The translations under genes were made by a program, and so were the position numbers. A stretch of DNA of 56,441 nt, the filler included, from Platydemus manokwari (Eukaryota), in assembly GCA_037951405.1 (NCBI GenBank). It is 3 parts of 3 records of this genome, joined end to end, with 100 filler letters (N's around TTAATTAATTAA, not from the genome) between each part and the next. Parts side by side here need not be neighbours in the genome. Positions count along the whole stretch, not along the records: positions 1 to 12,727 come from JBBMOY011986932.1; 2 more parts are not named here. The stretch is one strand, 5' to 3'. The notes beneath the pieces are model-generated. The model ran no database searches. It saw only the letters and a program-made list of their open reading frames with translations, and had not been told where the DNA came from. This document shows, piece after piece, positions 1 through 12,727 of this stretch (position 1 is its first letter; the number at the start of each line of letters is the position of its first letter).

Positions 1-1499
1 AATATCAAGGTTTGGGAAATAATTGATGTTAATCATGATATTTCATCTCTGGTGGCTTAATGCCTTTAGTCGATCATTTAATAACGGTAATTGTGCTAAT
101 AATTAATTAGCAAAATGTTAAGTGATTATAATTGTTAGTAAATCATTAATTTTTTCCCTTCTTTCTGTTTTCTAACATTTCCATATAAGCATGAACAGTT
201 AGGTTTCATTCTTGTGTTGAAGATATTCTACAGTCAAACTGTCGTTTTACCTTTTATTTCTGATACATTCAAGTCTTCATTATATTACAAAAACGTGGAT
301 ATCATACAATAAACATTCCTACGAGAACCAGAACTCTCAAAAATTCACAAGACTGCGTAACGGATTACTTCATAACATCCAGGCAGATGAAATTTAAAAA
401 AACACCAAAAATGTGCCCAAAATTTCCAATCAGAATTTGCTGTCTGATGCTACTGCGGTTGCATTGGACCAGTTACTGGGTTAAAATACCACTTCGAGAG
501 TCACAAACTACAAACTACCAGCGCAAAAACAACACTGATATTAATGCCTTACTCCTCACAAATGAGGATCTAATTTCGGAATGACTATCAGGCGCTGCCA
601 TGGAAGCCCATCTGATCAACAAAATCTCAGACAATAACAACAATATCTTCATCAAACCACAATCTGCCATAGCAATAGAAAATAATGACTACCAGTCATT
701 CTACAAATAATTCCCGTTCCAGAAGCTGGCAACATGACAAAGCGCATTCTGGTTAATTCACTGGAACAACTGGCATTGGAACCTGTACATAGTCGACCTC
801 GATAAAGAATGCTCTTACTTCATCGATCAAAAAACGAGGCATCTCTCCACACCTCAAAAGTCTCTATGGAACAAATTGGACTCAATTTTACAAAATCTAA
901 TTACAATCAAAGAACCGATTTATCTGAAACATTCAACTCTTAGATGAACTTCCACTTCAACTAAACTCACCGAACTGTGGCCTCTTCGTGATACAACATA
1001 TGCAAACAAATGTCAGGTATTCCACACCCCAGTCCTACCTCATCTTCGAAATGACATCAACAAGATCATATCAGACACAATTCTCTTCCACAAACTGTCA
1101 ATTCAATCCAACAATGAAAACAGTCCCACGATGAACTCAATTATGATCGAAGCAATAAAACTGAACGAGACTAGAGCTGATTGACCTCACACAAATGCTA
1201 ATATCAGTGCGTACTGCAATAGCAATAACCGATCAAACCCGTTTCTCTGCAGAGAAAATGGTCAAACCATCAGTCCTCCACTTCTCAGACCAATTAACTT
1301 CAGACTATAAACTTCGCAATCAATTCCTCAAGGAGTCAAAATAGACACTTCGAAGTATCATGCCATCAATAAGCCCGACCCCTAGTCCATCCGTACAAGA
1401 AATTATAAATCATTATTCAAAACCAGCTCCGCCGCAAATCACAGAAAAATCTAAACCAATTATTCCTAGACACAAATCTAAATGTTATCACTCGCACTG

Positions 1500-3535
1500 A
1501 TATTGAGCACACCTTCAAAAAACTGACAAACTCGGCACCTGGAAACAATGGGATCAATTAAAAAGATTGGAGATTAATCGATCCCCAGCACATCTTCCTC
1601 CAATCAATGTTCAATAGAATCCTCAAGAAGAAAACGATACCGAATCAATGGAATAAATGCAACACAAACCTTCTCCTGAAACCTGGAGAACAATCAACAT
1701 CCCACATGATCACATCCTGGCGTCCAATTGCTCTCACGGACTCATCTTACCGGATCTTCACTACAATACTAAACCTAAGGCTACTGAAATGGATAGATGC
1801 TGGAAACTTACTGTCACCAAACCAAAAGGCAATCTTTGCATCAGATAGATGCGCAGAGCACAATGCTTATCTATTCTTACTGCAAGAATACGTAGCTTAG
1901 CACAACAAGGACCTACATCTCAGCTGGATCTACCTCAAAGAAGCCTTCCCAAGCCTACCACACGAGGTCATCTGGTATACGCTTAACAAAATGAATTGCA
2001 ATACTCATTACGTTGAGATGATCAAAGCCATAAATCAGGACTCCAAATCAACGTGCACCTATGGAATGCTCAAGACACCACCAATTCCAATCTAGTGGAG
2101 TAAAACAAGGATGCCCCTTGGCAATGATACTCTTCTGCATGTCAATTGATTTCATCCTGCGCTCCTCAGCCAGTATACCGTGCCTCTTACAATATATGAC
2201 ACTCAATTATCAACACTGGCCTGCGCTGACGATATCTTTATCATAGCAAATTCTGGAGAAAACTTGGAAAACCGGCTGAATCAACTTATTCATCAAGCAA
2301 CGGATATTCTACTCACAATCTACCTCCAAATGTGGCTACTTCTGCAAAAAATAATTAAAACCGAATCGGCCTGACAATATTCGAAGAATCAGTGCCAATC
2401 ATGAATAGTGACAATCTTGGGGTGCCCTTCGGTCTACCAAGCGATCACCGGTTGACCACATCCTGGAATCAATCATCACAGACTTTGAATCTATCGCAGA
2501 CTCCAGACTGCATTCTACACAAAAATTTGAGGCTTATAATATTTTTTCTGCACTCGAGATTGCCTTTCCACCCCCGAATCCAACAAGTAGAAACTACCAA
2601 ACTGGATTCAAGTAAACTGATCTCAAACCAAAATAATGAATCAGTACAATCGTTTGACAAAAAAATATGTCGAATATCTCGCAAAATACCAAAAATGAAC
2701 GGATCAAACTCAAGCAATAACAACTTCATCCATGCACCTACCAAACTTAGCGGGATCGGGACTTACTACATCCCTCATGGAATATTGCATACGGAGCATT
2801 GTCGGTGACTTCAGCTATCTCACAAGCTCGGACCAAGAATTTAGAACATTCATGTCAAATCACATAATCAACATTGTGAATCACCAAATTACTGAATCAA
2901 ATGATCTCGCGACAACACTTCTCTGGATCTCTGACAAACTACCAACTGAAAAACCATTCTCGGCAGCAACATGGTGGACTAAAACTCGCCTTGCAATCAG
3001 AAAACTTAGGAAGAGCCAAATCGATTTGGAATTTTACAACCACCACACTGAAATTCTCCTGAAAATCACGGTGGACAACAACAAGACTTATCATTTCAAC
3101 TTCAACAATCGTGGTTAACTCTCAGGCATTCTACACGACTCGGTATCAATGCATTCCTTTGACGAGTGGGTTACCATGAAAAGACAAGGAAGACTGGTTC
3201 ACTGCTTTTCGGCCAGTCATCTCTCGCAAAAGCCTCTGGAAAACTTTCACTTGTCACCAGAAGTTAGGATTTTCACGTATCAGGCCAGAAACAACCTACT
3301 ATTACTGAATTACACACCGTATTTCATGAAGAATGGGAAATCAGTCTTATACCGCGATGCCAAACAGAACAGGAAACTGATGCTCACATATTCAGCCACT
3401 GTCCAGCGGTCCCTGGTCTGGCATCAAAAAGAAACTCAATCATTTTGGACCACCTAGGTAACTACTTACAATCATTCAGACTGGATACCGATATTGATAA
3501 AAGTGTTAGGCGAACCCCCTGAGATATAGTGATCA
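1500..3535 (+). mobile_element. Decayed non-LTR retrotransposon of the restriction-like-endonuclease group (R2/NeSL/Utopia-like): RT, CCHC finger and start of RLE; many frameshifts and stops
   Basis: APGNNGIN*KDW near 1536; WRPIAL...YRIF and LSPNQKA (ORF 1607-1900); GVKQGCPL (ORF 2061-2246); LACADDI at ~2216-2236 (YADD equivalent); QARNNLL (ORF 3149-3457); RCQTEQETDAHIFSHC at 3355-3402; DIVI at 3523-3534 (PD-like start of RLE), after which homology stops. The 5' part probably extends upstream to ~390. Confidence 0.85.
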
Positions 3536-3901
3536 AACATTTTTGTACACACTGGGCAATCATAATTAGCACCCTACATATTAAAACATACATATATCAT
3601 AACCTTGATTATGGACTGATCAAAAGAAGCACGCTTAAGGAGGACAATCCAACAGAAGACAATGCAGCTTCATCAAGAATTGCTTCATCAATAACTATAA
3701 ACTTATTCTTGCTATTATGAATTGCTTTTAACAGTTTTGATATCAACAATAAACAATTGGTGTAATTTTTACTATTATGAATCGTTTTTTATTTATTTGT
3801 TAAACAATTTTTATTATTCATTCTGTAATCGTTTTGTCATAAATGAAATGAATATTTATAAAATTCGTGTATGCGGACGAGGTGAACAAATTCGGAGGAG
3901 G

Positions 3902-4649
3902 TGTCAATAAAGCAAATAAATGATAGTGTTGATAATAAAACGAAAAAGAATAAATAAATAGTTAAATAATAAAATTAAAAGAAAAGAAAATAAATAAATA
4001 AAATATGAAAAAATATGAAAGATGTAAAATAAGGTTAAATTAAATCAATTAGAATAAGCATGGGAAAAATTGATTAAATAAATCGTGAGAAACTAATTAA
4101 TCAAAGTGAGCCAAATTCGTTAAACTAAACCAAAATGAGAGAAATTATGAGAGAAAAATCATCAGTTATTCTTGTGAAAAAATAGACAGGATCAGACGCA
4201 TATAAATACCAGGGCTGATCATAGGTGAATACCATAATAATAATCACACTAAGTGGAGACCTCAGCCGAGAAATTATTATTTCGAATCAAGAAAAGACTT
4301 TGACGGACGAAAATTACGAATGACCAATTGCGGAGGACTATCAGCTTTTAAGTGGCATGTGAACATATATCATCAATTACATTATTTGACTATTAATTCT
4401 GGGGTTTATTTTCATTCGAGATTCAGCAGTAAGTATTTTTTAGGTTACGTTTTTCATTCATTTCTTAAAAACGCTCGCTCGTGATAATTATTGTAATAAT
4501 TAATAATTAATTTTTACATTAGCTATCATTAACTTTGTTATTGGCTTTGTTGATAATAACTTCTTCCGTATTATTTTATTTAATATCTTCATCCGTTGAA
4601 TGGATTTTCCTGTTAATCGATGAGGCGAGGTACGGGGCATTTTGAAACA
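3902..4649 (+). mobile_element. LTR-like sequence (gypsy-type)
   Basis: Purine tract GGAGGAGG (3894-3901) directly before TGTCAA; ends TTGAAACA (imperfect terminal inverted repeat, TG...CA); internal TATAAATA at 4201; followed by TTTTTGGTG (PBS-like). Confidence 0.5.
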
Positions 4650-4759
4650 TTTTTGGTGTTCTTTTTTAATATTAAATGTTACCTTTTCTGTTTTCTAATT
4701 AATAAAGAATTTGAAACTTCATATTGCTATTTTGAATTATAATCAGTACGCATAGAGTC

Positions 4760-4918
4760 ATGTCGATCGCTGTTATACCACGATACTATAGGTTGTCACA
4801 TTACATTAATTTACTAAAGATTGTTACCAAACAGTATAATGTCGAATTCATACCACGAGACTGTATATTGTCATATTATAGTAATTTTATTGAAGATTGT
4901 CTCTATAACGTATAATAT
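4760..4918. repeat. Two diverged tandem copies of a ~78-bp unit
   Basis: ATGTCGA...ATACCACGA.ACT.TA..TTGTCA.ATTA...TAATTT...AAGATTGT...GTATAAT occurs twice in tandem. Confidence 0.7.
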
Positions 4919-5139
4919 CAATCATTTCAATCTTCAGTCATTGTGTTATCATCAATTATTAGCAATTATCATCAATTAATGCCTCCAAGAGAAGTAGAAC
5001 CGTTTGTTAAAGGTATTCGGGCCTAGCCCTATAAATAGGAAGAATATGCGTCTTTGATGGTGTAGATGAATGATGATTTTATATAAATTGATCTTACTTA
5101 TTCTTGCGCAATCTCCTATTGAATCGATAAACAATCGTT

Positions 5140-5660
5140 AAAATTATTTCTTCCAGATAAATCTGGTCATATCCCGTACATGCAATTGAATCTGTTCTAC
5201 TGCTGTTAATGTGCTATCGTGTCGCTTATTAATTGCAGTCACTGCCTTATATTTTCTGCGAATTTTATTTATTATCGTGCATGGGTTTAATGCATTGGAA
5301 TATTTTAAGGTAGTGAAAAATTCTCAGCCATTAATTCTGCCATGCGAGAGAGAAATTCTCAGTGATTATTTTATTCCATGGCTTTTAAATTTAATGCTTG
5401 ATATTTATTGCGCAGGTATTTATTTAATTCATGATATTTATTTAATGTCTAGCTATTTAATTTATTTTAGGTGTATATTTTGTCTGCAATGCGCGATAAT
5501 AGGTGTTAGATATTTTCTGCGCGATAACACATTACGGGTTAATTATAATTATTATTTTATGGGTATTTTTTATTATAAGGGAAATTTTTAAAGGGTTATT
5601 TTAATTGCAATATTTTGTGAGATATTTTAGACGGGTAATGCAATATTATTCTGGGTATAA
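5140..5660. repeat. Diverged copy of the hairpin-rich LTR-like family seen at 43050-43450
   Basis: ACTGCCTTATATTTTCTGCGA (5221-5241) looks like a deletion derivative of 43246-43292; AGTGATTATTTTATTC is shared with ~43390-43405; GATATTTTCTGCG recurs. Confidence 0.45.
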
Positions 5661-6189
5661 TATATTATATTTAAATTATATCAACCGCAAAGCTTTTCCG
5701 GAATTATAATTAAAAAAATTTAAATATTATTTTCATGCAATGTACTTTTATACTTTGATACAGGGGTGATTTTTAATACACTAACTCATGCAAATAACGG
5801 AGTCAGTTTTTTTCAAAACTCCAACAGTTTTATCAAATAAAATAAACTGTTAAGGTACTATTTTTTAATTAATTAATACTTTAATTAATTTCTGACTTCA
5901 ATTGGAATTTTTTAAACTAGGATTGATGCCACTAAAACTATATTCATTGTCTATAACTGAAACTCTGAGTGAATTATAATTAATTATAATGTAATTGTTA
6001 TTAAATACTTTATTTCAACCCAGAATATATATAAATACAGTGCCAAAAGTAAGAAATGAGCACAAAAGCCTTTAACAATAATCTGTAAACCACTATCGAT
6101 AATTACGGAAAAATTAGCTGACACCAAGAACTCACCAAAACTAGCAAAGACTCAAATCAAGGCGAGACGTGATTCAACGAAATCAAAAT

Positions 6190-7100
6190 AATTCATGAAG
6201 TAAAGTTCCATTGTGGTAAATGCGGTAATGCATGCAATTGGATTAATTACTATTTAGACAATATAGGAAAGGTGGAACAGAAAATTTACCAACCGTTTAC
6301 ACAACAATTCTTCTTTGACCTCGATTTTCAACGTAGTTTGGTGCAATTACCTACAACTGCTGGTTATTCAATCTCTTTCGAGGCAAGACAGTGGCACGCA
6401 TATGATCACATCACACAATTTTAAATTTTTATTATAGTACCATACTAATTGTTGATGCTATTGGTGATTTGTTTTATTTTATGCGAATGAGATCTCTATT
6501 TATAATTTGTAAATAATATTTTACGTATCCCATCTTATGCCAACAAACAATTTAATTTATAAGCCATCTTATAGGAAGCCCAGTTCAACTTACAAACATA
6601 ATATGAACTCAGCTAAGGCATAACAATAATAATAATTTAATAATTATTATAATAATCCCCAGTTTGAAAGTTATTTCATATTCCTTTGAGAATGACAGTG
6701 AGCAGATGTCCAGAGCCATACTCTAATTACAACGAAGCATGTGATGTATTCTGAACCTGCAAAAGAACAGACATGCTGATTTTGGAATTTGTTATTTAGT
6801 TTTTTATTATAATAATAATTATTATTCACGACACCATTATCAGTACTATGGAATTCTAAATATCCATTCTAAAGATGTTCTGTTACCTCGAACAACTCTA
6901 ATACACGTATCGAGATGGGATCAGCGGCTCTAGCCAGTGATTTAATTGATTTCTTATTATGTATCAAATCTTTTAATATTCAATGTCACAGATGTACCTT
7001 ACTAAAAGGTAATGAGATGATTCTGAAGGTGATATTATTTACTGAAATGATGTGAGACCTCATGACACCTGCCAAATGTAATATTACAACGACTTTCTGT
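6190..7100 (-). pseudogene. Possible heavily decayed class A GPCR-like pseudogene
   Basis: Minus-strand fragments in the expected order: SLARAAD (6940-6920, TM2 LAxxD-like), SMALDIC (6722-6702, TM3 DRY-region-like), FHLSYIV*IVINPIAC (~6280-6230, TM7 NPxxY-like). Many stops and frameshifts; the motifs are short and could be chance. Confidence 0.2.
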
Positions 7101-10100
7101 TTTAAATTAACTTTTATTATTGTAACAACACTGTCAACAACAATATATACACTTAATAAAAATTGGATAATAAACGACTGATATTTTATACATAATTCCA
7201 GAAGCGTCTAAGTTTAATAAAACCCTGAAAGAAATAATACCAGGTGTTCAAGAACTTTTGGATCAAACCTGATAAATAGGAAGAACATGCAGTTTACAAT
7301 GTAAATAGAGTAGATTGATTGACAATTTGCAAGTCTATGATTGGTTACTGAGTTGTCTATCAATAATACTAGCTTGTATCGATCCTTTGAAAGTTGCTTT
7401 AAATGGATTTTGATTAATTTTCACGTTATATATAAGTTAATATCCCAATAAAAATAAAACACAACTGCCATACTAAATTAACGATTGTTAGATATTCATA
7501 TAATTCTTAAATGTATTGATATAATTGATAGCATATCAAATCTCAAACAGAAAAACATGTAAAAAATGATGTTACAAAGATCATAATAAAGTGGGTTCTC
7601 TTAATAAATTTTAATATTTCATATTCTGAATGCCTTCTCAAAAATCTTTGAAATGATATTGTTTAAGATTTCAAAGGAAAGGATAGCGGTTCCTTTAATG
7701 ATATTACTTAATGTCTATTCATAAATTTATTTTAACCTTCGACAAAATGTTAAAAGATAACTTTGATAGATGTGTTTTTTTACTGAAGATTGTAATAATT
7801 TTATTTTTAAAATCATTTTCCAAATCAGCTAAATGTTTATAAATAACTTTTTAATATAGTATTTAATAATTATATAACTTTAAAACAATAAATTTTAAAT
7901 TTCATAAATATGTATTTTATCATTTCTTTTAAAATATTTTATTTTTATCATACGTAATCTTTTAACTTGTTTACATTTCTTTCATTTATTGAAGTGCAAC
8001 GTCATATCACATTATTTAAAATAACCGGTACATATTTACTAATCTAAGCATACATTAATTTCATATGGCAGTGAAGATTGAAAGTTACAAATTGTAGATC
8101 AACATACATTATAAAATTATAGCTGTCATAAATTTACAGTAATTTCAGATTTGCAAACTATCGATGGATATTAGAACTTTGCTTAAATTTCAATTTAAAA
8201 AATTAATTTTTCGATTTTTCGATACCTAAATTATTTCGAACAAATTTTTAAATATTTGTATTGCATAATTACAATTGAATGTAATTATTTCTGTATATAT
8301 AATGCATAAATACGAATCACTTATAGTAATGTATTGAAAATCACTTGAATGTGTTTCTAATTACTCCTTTTGTCGCATCATCATTATAATTCAATAAAGC
8401 TAATTACATTTATCAATTCAAAACAATTATAATGATACCATTGTTTGGAATAAAACAATAGACAAATTATAACTGTGTCTGAAAAATTAAAACAAAAATT
8501 TGTAATACCAGATAATTTAGCATCTTTTGTCAATGATTAACCTGTACCTAAGCTTATCTAAACATTTAATTTATAGTTGAGTAGTTTAAAGATAACTTGT
8601 TTTAATTGTGATATTAATAAACCTAATAATCATAGTAATTTTAACATGTGTCTGCATGAATGAAATGAGAAATATACGAATTCTACTTCTGTCATTACCC
8701 CAATGTGAAGAACGAATTTTTCCATGAAGTAATAACACATAAACTACTCACTTTAAAGAATAAATATATGCGAGGATCAAAATGATGAAAATGCGTCAAT
8801 GAAATTTAAGTCACAAATGATGTGCCAAACTTAGAATTTATTTGTGCCCCATCATTATAAAGGAATTGTAGATATTTTGATTCTTAATAAATTAGGACTA
8901 ATTGCTATTGTTAGAATATCAACTGAAGTTGAGTACTGAGTAATTATAAATCACAATGAATTATAAAAATCGATTCTTCACCAAACACGACTAAAATCAC
9001 ACTAAATCAACAATAGATAATCATACAAGGAGTGATCAGCACCCGAAAGTTAAATAACAAAATAGAGGACAACCAAAGATGTTAGCGACCAAAAAGACTG
9101 ATAGTGGTTCGTGAAATCTACTCACTTTTATAGACTAGTCGTGTGTGTTCACTTGATGTTTTAGAGTTTTAATTTTCATTCGATAGAGTCGTACATGTGT
9201 CGGTCTGTTAGCAAATTCTCTTGCATCTCTCATACTTTTGGCGAGTCTACATGTTTGTTGCCAGTTGTTGGTGTGGGTCAGTTGATTATTGAGTTCTAAA
9301 TATGGATTGATATATATATATATAAGAAGAATCTGACTGGCACGTGCGCTTATCGAATCTGTGAATTGAGGATTATAACCATCGTTTTCGTGAATATTTT
9401 TGGTTGTTCTTGTGACCTACCTAACACTATGCATTCACCAAATAAATACCAATACACCAAATTCAAACATAAAGTGGATCTCCTGCATAATTTTATTGGA
9501 AGATGTCAAATGCCATTTGATCAACAAAGACTGTTGAAAGATACACACTTCATAAGCCTAAAAATACGAGTAACTAAATAAAAATACTAAGAAGAATAGC
9601 ACCGACTGGAAAGTCGAACTATATACTTTCATATGGTTTATGAATGATCTACTCGCAACATCACAGTATTGAATAAACTTCGGATCAAGAAAATAATAAT
9701 CAATAAAACAGTAATACTATACATCAAAACCAATATTAGGGCAGACTAATTGAATTCCATCGAGATCTTGCTAGTTGAAATTTCAGACAAGTAAAGAATC
9801 CAAACATTCTAGATGGGTATAGAGTGCACAATTCAAATGATGAATTAAAAGATTAATTTAAGAATGAAGTCTTACCAAATTGTTGAAACAAAGTCAAATG
9901 AAGACTTCAAACTTCTTTTCTGAACTGATCAATTCAACACGAATTCTCGTTGGAACGAAAGTAATTATTACCGAGTGAGAAGAAATCCACAGGATAAATG
10001 AGAGTTACTGAAAAATACTACTTATTAAATAAATAGTTATTGTTATAACTGAAAATAATTGCGAGATTGACGATCGATATAACAGCACTTACAAAGCGTA

Positions 10101-11363
10101 ACACTAACTATAAATATTTGAATAAATAAAATTTTCGAAATGAATTTCTGCAATCATTTAAATTATATTTTTCTGTGATACCTATACTTCTTAAATACTT
10201 TATTCAATCAATAATAATCTTTACGATGTTAAGACCTTGTAAATTCATTTCTAATTCTAATCGATCATGAGATGTGGAAAAACGATTTACCTGCTATAAT
10301 TGTCAAATTTATTTTTAAAAATATCTGTTTTTAAATCATTAAAAATAATATTACCTTTTAATGTAGATTTCTATGAAGAGTTATGGCTTGTGAAATATTA
10401 TTAGCAATTACTAATTATTTCTGATCTTATGATTCTGTTATTCTTATATTAATTCAGTAAGATACTATTTATATTAATGCGAACAAACATAGCTACTTTA
10501 TAACATCAAAATATTTTATACAATCTAAATTATTTCAAACAATTTGAAATTTCGTTTTTAAAAAAGCGAAATTTAAATTCTCTTTAGATTTGTCAGAATT
10601 TTCAAATAACATATTGTGTAACGTTAAATAGCAGCTCAATGAAGTAATATAAATAATAACTCAAACCCAAGAGCGAAACATTATCTGTGGTCCACTATTC
10701 CTCAAAATGTTTGTCCTTCACAATTTTATAGTATTAACTAAGATTTGCTTGTTCAAACAATAAAACTAATTAAGTTAGAGATTAATATAAATTACAAACA
10801 GTATAGAAACATCAAATTATGCCAATCAATAAATAAAAATGAAGCTTAAATTTAAAAACAAATTAATGGTCATATGATCATAAAGTATAAAGAACGAGAA
10901 AACTAATTTATTGATAAATGTACAATACTCATTAACTTCCAAAAATAGCTGTAATACTTAGTTACTAAAATTTTTCAACAGAGAGTACAGCAAACTACAC
11001 CTAACGAATTGAAAGACCAACAGAATTAAAATGATACAACAAATAAGTACATCAAATATGAATTTATGAACCAATTCAATTCAATAAACAAATATAAAAT
11101 TTAGACAATATAAATATACATAAATTTAACAATTTCAAGAATATAATAATAAAATTCACCCATAATAAACAAAGAATAGAAATTGACAAGAATTTATAAA
11201 TACAGTTACAAATTTGCGCGCAAGAAATGTAATTTAATTTATTGATTAATTGAAACAACTGACAGTCATCATAACCTGATTGACAAGTAAATCTGATTAA
11301 AACGTCGATAATTATTTGGAATAAAGCTTCACGAGGAGTATTAAGTTACCAAAGTCTGGTAAA

Positions 11364-12347
11364 TTAACGAGAAGTATGTCCGTTGAAATTTGTATAACGA
11401 GTACAACCAGGTACACATTGAGAAGAATCGCCATTGTACTTGGCATGAAAAATACAAATGTTTGATATTTTCAAATCCAATGGTTTCGGTTGAAACGAAC
11501 AACCAAGCTGACATTTCAGAGCACCTGATCCATATTTTAAATGATAAAAACAAAGATTTCGTGGTTTATTTTTGTCGTTGAAAGTATGTAGATCGGAGTT
11601 GATTGTTGGAGATGATGGTCTGGAACTTGATTTGGGTGTTGAAACATGTTGTTTATTTTGGGTTTTATTTTTCGAATTTACTTGCTGTTCTAGTCTATTA
11701 AAATTTTCTTGAAGTGTTTGAAGTTGTAATTTCAAAGAAAAAAGTTCAGTAGATAAATAAGTAATGATTTTGTCATCTGAAGATATTTCATTAGACATTT
11801 CAGTATTTTTAACTGGCTGTTTTTCAGAAATTTTATCAGCAAAGTCTGCTAATTTACGAAGTTCAATATTGGAGATTCCATTCACTATTTTTTGTACCAA
11901 AGGAGGCAATCCAGAAATAAACGAATGACGCATAATCTGATCATTGTCTTTTGTTATACCTGGATATTGTGACTCAAGATCTTCAATAGCTTTATTTAAG
12001 TATTCAGACGGTTTACATCCACTTCTGGAATTTTTAGAAAAATAGTTTTCAATGATCTCATTAGGTTTGCCTTTATAATATTCGTACAGTAAGTCTTTTA
12101 AAGAATTGTATGGATTGCAAGACGTTGACACCTCAACTAAATCATCTGATAAGAGTTTAAGAATATCCAGAGGTAAGCACGATAAAGCTTGATAAAATTT
12201 ATTAGTAGATGATAAGGCAGAAAAATCAAATTTGGCTTCAAGAAGTTGAAACCATGTTTTCGGTGATCCAGACTTATTTAAAAAAAAAGGAAGTTTATCA
12301 ACAGTGTTATCAGAATTTCTCACTGATTTGTTATTTATATATTCCAT
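11364..12347 (-). CDS. Intact stand-alone Ty3/gypsy (CsRn1-like, DUF7041-type) Gag protein, 327 aa, with two CHCC zinc knuckles
   Basis: KLPFF...PKTWFQLLEAKF...KFYQALSCLP...PYNSLK...KPSEYL...FISGLPPLVQ...LADFADKI match the CsRn1-type capsid pattern, followed by a coiled-coil segment, CFYHLKYGSGALKCQLGC and CIFHAKYNGDSSQCVPGC. No stops or frameshifts. No intact pol downstream. Confidence 0.88.
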   Translation of the reverse strand: MEYINNKSVRNSDNTVDKLPFFLNKSGSPKTWFQLLEAKFDFSALSSTNKFYQALSCLPLDILKLLSDDLVEVSTSCNPYNSLKDLLYEYYKGKPNEIIENYFSKNSRSGCKPSEYLNKAIEDLESQYPGITKDNDQIMRHSFISGLPPLVQKIVNGISNIELRKLADFADKISEKQPVKNTEMSNEISSDDKIITYLSTELFSLKLQLQTLQENFNRLEQQVNSKNKTQNKQHVSTPKSSSRPSSPTINSDLHTFNDKNKPRNLCFYHLKYGSGALKCQLGCSFQPKPLDLKISNICIFHAKYNGDSSQCVPGCTRYTNFNGHTSR

Positions 12348-12727
12348 CTAAAATATAATAAATATTACTTCCAAATGATTTGGTATAATTATTTTACTTT
12401 TAAAATTACAAACCCTGTGAAAAATTATAAAAACACAAATTATTTGAAATTCATTTTATATAAAACAAAAACAATAACACATATTAACAAAACTTTAGTT
12501 AACAAATTAACTATACAGATTAATAAAAAATTATTTTAAAATTAAAATACTTATAAAGTTTAAGAATAATTAGTAATGTTGTTAATATTAAAATTATATA
12601 TGAATAATAAATAAAATTTATCATATGAAATTTGAATTTGATTACAAATACTGGTTAAAGCTAAAAAATAATGTCCTAAAATAAAATTTTTAAATTGTGG
12701 AGTGTATTGCAAAAATCTATATAGATT

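Follow-up and report, generated by a model that had tools for sequence, protein, structure and literature searches.

Introduction

An uninterrupted gag open reading frame (ORF) that stands alone, with neither a pol gene nor long terminal repeats (LTRs) beside it, raises the question of whether it is a host gene made from a retrotransposon or simply what remains of one. Gypsy-type gag genes have repeatedly become host genes, as Arc, dArc, PEG10, PNMA and Gagr illustrate, and to our knowledge the gag domestications known from invertebrates are few. We address this question here for a locus of Platydemus manokwari in a window of 56,441 nucleotides (filler included), by which we mean the whole stretch of DNA presented; the piece analysed comprises positions 1-12727, and upstream of the gag ATG only 380 nt can be read before the edge of that piece. 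A first-pass annotation had proposed that the locus is either a host-retained gene or a gag-only element, and to these we add a third live alternative, namely that it is a leftover from which pol has been lost. Within the piece the locus is a stand-alone gag of a Ty3/gypsy lineage with CHCC zinc knuckles (CsRn1-like), with no pol or LTR, and the argument below turns on which history best explains that arrangement.

Results

An intact gag ORF in A+T-rich DNA

The piece is 62-80% A+T in every 500-base interval, with 73% A+T in the flanks of the ORF, and at flank composition stop codons would be expected at a spacing of 12 codons. The probability of 327 open codons is then about 5e-13, which together with strong homology rules out a chance ORF; the reading frame is thus genuinely coding, whether because it is recent or because selection maintains it, and its description as uninterrupted stands (Table 1). 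It is the only ORF of at least 140 aa in the piece. A tblastn match to one relative ran 26 codons past the ATG, and an upstream extension of the ORF was considered and set aside, given that the upstream 380 nt contain 14 in-frame stops and that the encoded protein (hereafter the window protein) begins with the same residues as its closest relative, P0001; we take the ATG at 12347 as the start of gag. An 89-codon open stretch that begins in the gag frame a few codons after the gag stop was likewise considered as a relic of pol and rejected, with no similarity found to any Pol or Pfam family and a length of which about one example is expected by chance in the piece.

The piece contains no tRNA genes or Rfam families. 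It does contain one other transposable element, a decayed LINE-like retrotransposon followed by an A-rich tandem tract, and for this element the earlier statement that all other transposon ORFs are broken holds: its RVT_1 and zf-RVT matches lie in three frames, with at least two frameshifts as well as stops. Its GC content is about 0.39-0.42, compared with 0.27 around it, and because this relic is so much broken and yet so far from the local base composition, the decay of ORFs here is much faster than compositional drift.

Table 1. Features of the gag locus and its surroundings, with positions counted along the window.
Feature	Position	Strand	Basis
Intact gag ORF, ATG start, 327 codons and TAA stop	11364-12347	minus	No breaks; homology to Gag ORFs of LTR elements
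Capsid-like two-lobed all-helical domain, residues about 20-180	11808-12290	minus	AlphaFold2 (AF2) and Foldseek
Pfam DUF7041 (PF23055) match, residues 28-94	12066-12266	minus	28 bits
Long single helix, coiled-coil-like, residues 191-228	11664-11777	minus	AF2; weak coiled-coil family matches
Disordered Ser/Lys/Asn-rich linker, residues 232-259	11571-11654	minus	AF2; main length difference from P0001
First CHCC zinc knuckle (CX2HX9CX3C), residues 266-283	11499-11552	minus	Exact motif
Second CHCC zinc knuckle (CX2HX9CX3C), residues 298-315	11403-11456	minus	Exact motif
Putative 66-nt 5'-UTR intron, GTTTGT donor and TTTTAG acceptor	12348-12413	minus	Candidate sites by sequence
AATAAA, 121 nt after the gag stop	11238-11243	minus	Motif common in the piece
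89-codon open stretch in the gag frame	11079-11345	minus	Pfam and Pol comparisons
Decayed non-LTR (LINE-like) retrotransposon	about 500-4020	plus	Two collinear weak RVT_1 matches and a weak zf-RVT match
A-rich tandem tract after the LINE relic	3934-4022

The encoded protein is a complete Gag

The window protein is a complete capsid-nucleocapsid Gag, running from a short disordered N-terminus to two zinc knuckles. Its match to DUF7041 is a borderline assignment to that family, scoring 28 bits where the curated threshold is also 28 (E 3e-06), and its relatives score up to 99.5 bits for the same domain, which is present throughout the family; a literature search on DUF7041 found no paper. An AlphaFold2 model built on an alignment of 91 sequences has a mean pLDDT of 83, rising to about 87-98 over residues 21-180, with helices from residue 30 to residue 176. 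The best PDB matches of this model in Foldseek are retroelement-type capsids, namely rat Arc (probability 0.99), human Arc (0.91), the murine leukaemia virus (MLV) capsid (CA), the PEG10 CA C-terminal domain (CA-CTD), dArc1, the Ty3 capsid and PNMA2, with TM scores of 0.4-0.6 on the target and no E-value at or below 0.001; the CA-CTD of Ty1 p22 also appears among the matches, at a probability of 0.3-0.44. The predicted model thus has the two-lobed fold of retroviral-type capsids, and the comparison with Ty3 and Arc that had been proposed as a check comes out in favour of a capsid, with resemblance to domains of Arc, dArc1, PEG10, Ty3 and MLV. PDB sequence searches with the protein and with the 91-sequence profile gave no meaningful match, and a library of predicted viral structures gave only scattered, uninformative matches of low TM score.

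A family of autonomous CHCC-knuckle elements

A word search returned a single relative, P0001, after which a full profile search was run; this returned 2244 representative proteins at E <=0.001, with 324 at <=1e-10. At least one CX2HX9CX3C motif is present in 141 of the 152 proteins that were fetched, and CCHC is present in none of the 152. Replacement of CCHC by CX2HX9CX3C (CHCC) is the signature of Gag in the CsRn1 clade of Ty3/gypsy (PMC2582038), and the window protein has two exact copies of the motif; knuckle spacing and homology together bear out its earlier identification as a CsRn1-like Ty3/gypsy Gag. It also shares the helix-rich body of the Gags of CsRn1, PwRn1 and AgCR (PMC2582038), a clade spread over ecdysozoans and lophotrochozoans; the named relatives found here are from ticks, insects, schistosomes and other flukes, and a cuttlefish, often in many copies, and nearly all relatives in cluster look-ups are unnamed metagenome or read-archive proteins. 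It differs from that clade in having two knuckles and in standing without pol, LTR or tRNA-Trp primer site in the piece. No search returned a protein named CsRn1. The window protein is a candidate member of the CsRn1 clade in the strict sense: its knuckles conform, the primer site does not and a reverse transcriptase (RT) is absent. Placement by RT phylogeny and a 4-bp target-site duplication also define that clade, and the locus has neither an RT nor element ends.

The genomic context of the family could be read for seven relatives (L001-L007), which are metagenome and read-archive contigs. Their Gags are 24-32% identical to the window protein over nearly the whole length, their capsid domain, helix and CHCC knuckle or knuckles being arranged alike, and the window Gag matches all seven, each with pol directly downstream, at E 1e-39 to 1e-30, as expected of a Ty3/gypsy (Metaviridae-type) Gag. 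What sets them apart from the window locus is an ORF encoding RT, RNase H and integrase (RVT_1, RT_RNaseH or RT_RNaseH_2, Integrase_H2C2, rve) that overlaps gag or starts at most 313 nt after it in all seven. One of them, L001, has a pair of LTRs of about 320 nt spaced 6.5 kb apart, gag begins about 100-300 nt after the LTR in relatives, and fused gag-pol gene models are found in Dicrocoelium (fluke), Ornithodoros (tick) and Megachile (bee). Since pol lies beside gag in every relative with readable context, with an LTR pair in L001 and the fused gene models besides, the normal state of the CHCC Gag family is that of an autonomous LTR retrotransposon.

Several of the L001-L007 Gags carry N-terminal extensions of 130-420 residues, which the window protein and P0001 do not have. 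We note that in four proteins of the family (P0028, P0032, P0033 and P0061) a ubiquitin-like domain lies directly N-terminal of the DUF7041 capsid part, and such domains may explain the extensions in the nearest element Gags. P0061 has a RING finger in addition; as the genes of its metagenome contig were predicted without introns, the RING, ubiquitin-like and Gag parts are probably encoded by a single uninterrupted ORF. Between its 5' LTR and gag, L001 also has an extra ORF of 437 aa that matches no Pfam family (L001:411-1724, plus strand), of which no counterpart was found in the window.

Absence of pol, LTR and primer site

Similarity to pol was sought across the piece, including the 11.3 kb downstream of gag, with eight comparator Pols, namely the seven family Pols of L001-L007 (38-57% identical to each other) and the Dicrocoelium gag-pol. 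None was found, the best E-value over all eight being 0.47. The description of the locus as pol-less, with no intact protease or RT, is thus upheld, and the faint relic of pol that had been suggested after the gag stop finds no support.

The earlier report of no LTR pair also stands within the piece, with its 380 nt of readable upstream sequence. There are no long direct repeats, only short A+T-rich repeats of the kind expected by chance, and the similarity of the 380 nt upstream to downstream DNA is no higher than in shuffled sequence, with 41 of 100 shuffles reaching the observed score. Because gag begins 100-300 nt after the LTR in relatives and no repeat is seen here, the missing repeat argues mildly against an intact LTR-gag-LTR element, from the 380 nt that were read. 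Within the piece an intact gag ORF thus stands without pol or LTRs, an arrangement shared with domesticated gag genes, and not in the pol and LTR context of a Ty3/gypsy element.

A tRNA-Trp primer-binding site is the pattern given for CsRn1-like elements (PMC2582038), and no match to it occurs in the piece with up to two mismatches, in agreement with the earlier finding of no primer-binding site. The pattern has no exact match in L001-L004 either, including L001, in which the end of the 5' LTR is present; the branch of CHCC Gags to which these four belong may use another primer, in which case the tRNA-Trp pattern would not be diagnostic there. No other gag-like piece was found in the window, and no close relatives were found in collections of viral, prokaryote-genome and metagenome contigs. 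An exact look-up of the window protein in protein and contig collections, which do not include the host genome, returned nothing.

Splice-like sites and poly(A) signal

The layout of a spliced gene had been described for this locus, and each of its motifs is present where it was placed. TTTTAG ends at 12348 and abuts the gag ATG, its TAG being an in-frame stop, and CAGG|GTTTGT, with its GT at 12413-12412, would make a 66-nt interval with that acceptor; a loose pattern picked up no other donor-like site in the upstream 380 nt. The AATAAA at about 120 nt past the stop is also there. Both AATAAA and TTTTAG are common in this A+T-rich piece, at 3.3 per kb per strand and 0.7 per kb respectively, and are therefore unremarkable; individually, the splice and poly(A) motifs are not beyond chance. 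The putative intron is non-coding (5' UTR), and the coding exon was searched as it stands. Origin from a retroposed mRNA was considered and rejected, there being no A-run after the AATAAA.

P0001 and constraint on the ORF

P0001 (UniParc UPI0006041148; 344 aa), which is known only as a protein sequence, is 55% identical to the window protein by BLASTP and 62% identical in alignment, and among about 15 billion proteins no other exceeds about 32% identity. The two have the same first residues, the same end, the same domains and both knuckles, and identity is 69% in the capsid domain, 69% in the knuckles and 40% in the helix. The 32 extra residues of P0001 lie in the disordered linker, and lesser length differences fall between the domains and in the C-terminal tail. 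These shared ends and knuckles, with length differences mostly in the linker, indicate that constraint acted on the lineage connecting the two proteins. Of the 37 columns in which at least 70% of relatives agree, the window protein has the family residue in 33, and in comparisons with 15 outgroups its private changes are fewer than those of P0001 in 14; to judge by its predicted sequence, it is without sign of decay. The GC content at codon positions 1, 2 and 3 is 0.38, 0.34 and 0.21, compared with 0.27 in the flanks, which identifies a coding lineage long resident in A+T-rich DNA. P0001 is alone in its cluster, and this singleton with the same ends hints at a low-copy gene. The signs of constraint at the protein level fit a host gene and a recently active element equally well.

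How old an unselected ORF of this kind could be follows from its composition. Of all single-base changes in the gag ORF, 5.9% create a stop, and the neutral probability of gag staying open is 0.32 at K=0.02, 0.06 at 5% divergence and 0.003 at 10%. The intact ORF is compatible with a neutral age of up to about 2-3% divergence. Pol cannot have faded slowly beside an unselected gag, since a neutral gag would by then be broken too; either pol was removed recently in one step, or gag has been kept by selection.

Discussion

The reading that we prefer, at even chances, is that this gag is still in the transposon state, as a leftover or a gag-only copy and not a demonstrated host gene. Pol would have been lost in one step, with gag too recent to have decayed, or alternatively a gag-only copy would survive on the enzymes of full elements; if expressed, the Gag would be expected to multimerise through its capsid lobes and helix, and its knuckles to bind nucleic acid, as in Gag proteins of the superfamily. 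Such a state is what the family leads one to expect, given that every relative with readable context is an autonomous element, and it is consistent both with the neutral age allowed by the intact ORF and with splice and poly(A) signals no better than chance. Several points speak against it: for all of pol to go in one step while gag stays whole to its stop, the break would have to fall within a short span; a portion of the 5' LTR would be expected in the upstream 380 nt, and a matching 3' copy was not found; P0001 as the sole protein above ~32% identity is more suggestive of a gene in few copies than of a repeat family; and the retention of conserved columns, with fewer private changes than P0001 against nearly all outgroups, shows no sign of decay. 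A host-retained, or domesticated, capsid gene is a reading that we consider a serious contender of somewhat lower probability than the transposon state. Pol and LTRs would then have been lost long ago and gag kept by purifying selection, which would account for an ORF that is intact without recognisable pol or LTR, slow decay of pol being expected to break gag as well. Conservation of P0001 in its ends and knuckles, its lack of other kin above about 32% identity, a window branch no faster than the P0001 branch, and a GC3 far below GC1 and GC2 as from long coding evolution in an A+T-rich genome all agree with retention, as does the acceptor-like site that abuts the ATG; transcription may start at a host promoter, with a short intron in the 5' UTR, and the function could be RNA packaging of the Arc/dArc kind, or restriction of related elements as a Gag-derived inhibitor. 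It is conceivable, and again short of an even chance, that the window ORF and P0001 both represent one such CHCC-type capsid gene, as orthologues or old paralogues, with that promoter and intron. Against this, constraint between two Gag lineages is equally expected of active elements, and motifs of the splice and poly(A) kind abound in the piece. Co-option of a gag is accepted on synteny across species (or on a gene tree congruent with that of the hosts) together with measured selection (PMC8321522).

Two further histories are less probable than either of these. A gag-only non-autonomous element (LTR-gag-LTR) that borrows its enzymes from full members of its family would explain a complete Gag with both knuckles and no pol, and full autonomous relatives are widespread; we consider it improbable nonetheless, as the 380 nt upstream has no LTR-like similarity to any downstream DNA, no tRNA-Trp primer site is seen with up to two mismatches, and a second copy appears neither in the piece nor in the collections, from which the host genome is absent. 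It is very improbable that gag belongs to a full element with its pol and LTRs situated outside the piece, or beyond more than 11 kb of inserted DNA, or across an assembly join. The 5' side is indeed largely unseen, with the piece ending so close to the ATG; however, pol overlaps or closely follows gag in relatives and is found nowhere in the 11.3 kb here, and no recognisable young insertion adjoins the gag stop.

The locus resembles the domesticated gags Arc, dArc1/2, PEG10, PNMA, Drosophila Gagr and Crtg (PMC8321522, PMC7231272) in being a stand-alone gag-derived ORF without LTRs, and Arc, PEG10, dArc1 and PNMA2 are among the best PDB matches of its predicted capsid fold. It differs from them in that they have no detectable sequence similarity to the window protein, derive from other gypsy clades, and owe their status to synteny, selection and expression. 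Gag-derived inhibitors such as Ty1 p22 offer a parallel of idea only, in that a piece of Gag without pol could interfere with related capsids; p22 belongs to another superfamily, and the window protein is a full-length Gag and not a fragment. By analogy, the protein would work like any Ty3/gypsy Gag, with the layout of a knuckle-bearing relative of Arc or PEG10.

Our searches of literature and databases found no domesticated gag from the CHCC-knuckle clade. If the locus is a leftover, it is ordinary, and records that a CsRn1-like family was recently, or still is, present in this A+T-rich genome. If it is host-retained, it would be the first report of a co-opted gag in the CHCC-knuckle (CsRn1-like) clade, and were it fixed, syntenic and expressed, it would represent an independent domestication in which the complete layout of capsid and knuckles survives, with two zinc knuckles and a coiled-coil helix, unlike Arc and dArc1, which have lost their knuckles. 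A host-retained gene of this kind would provide a simple case for asking what role an RNA-binding capsid protein plays in an invertebrate host.
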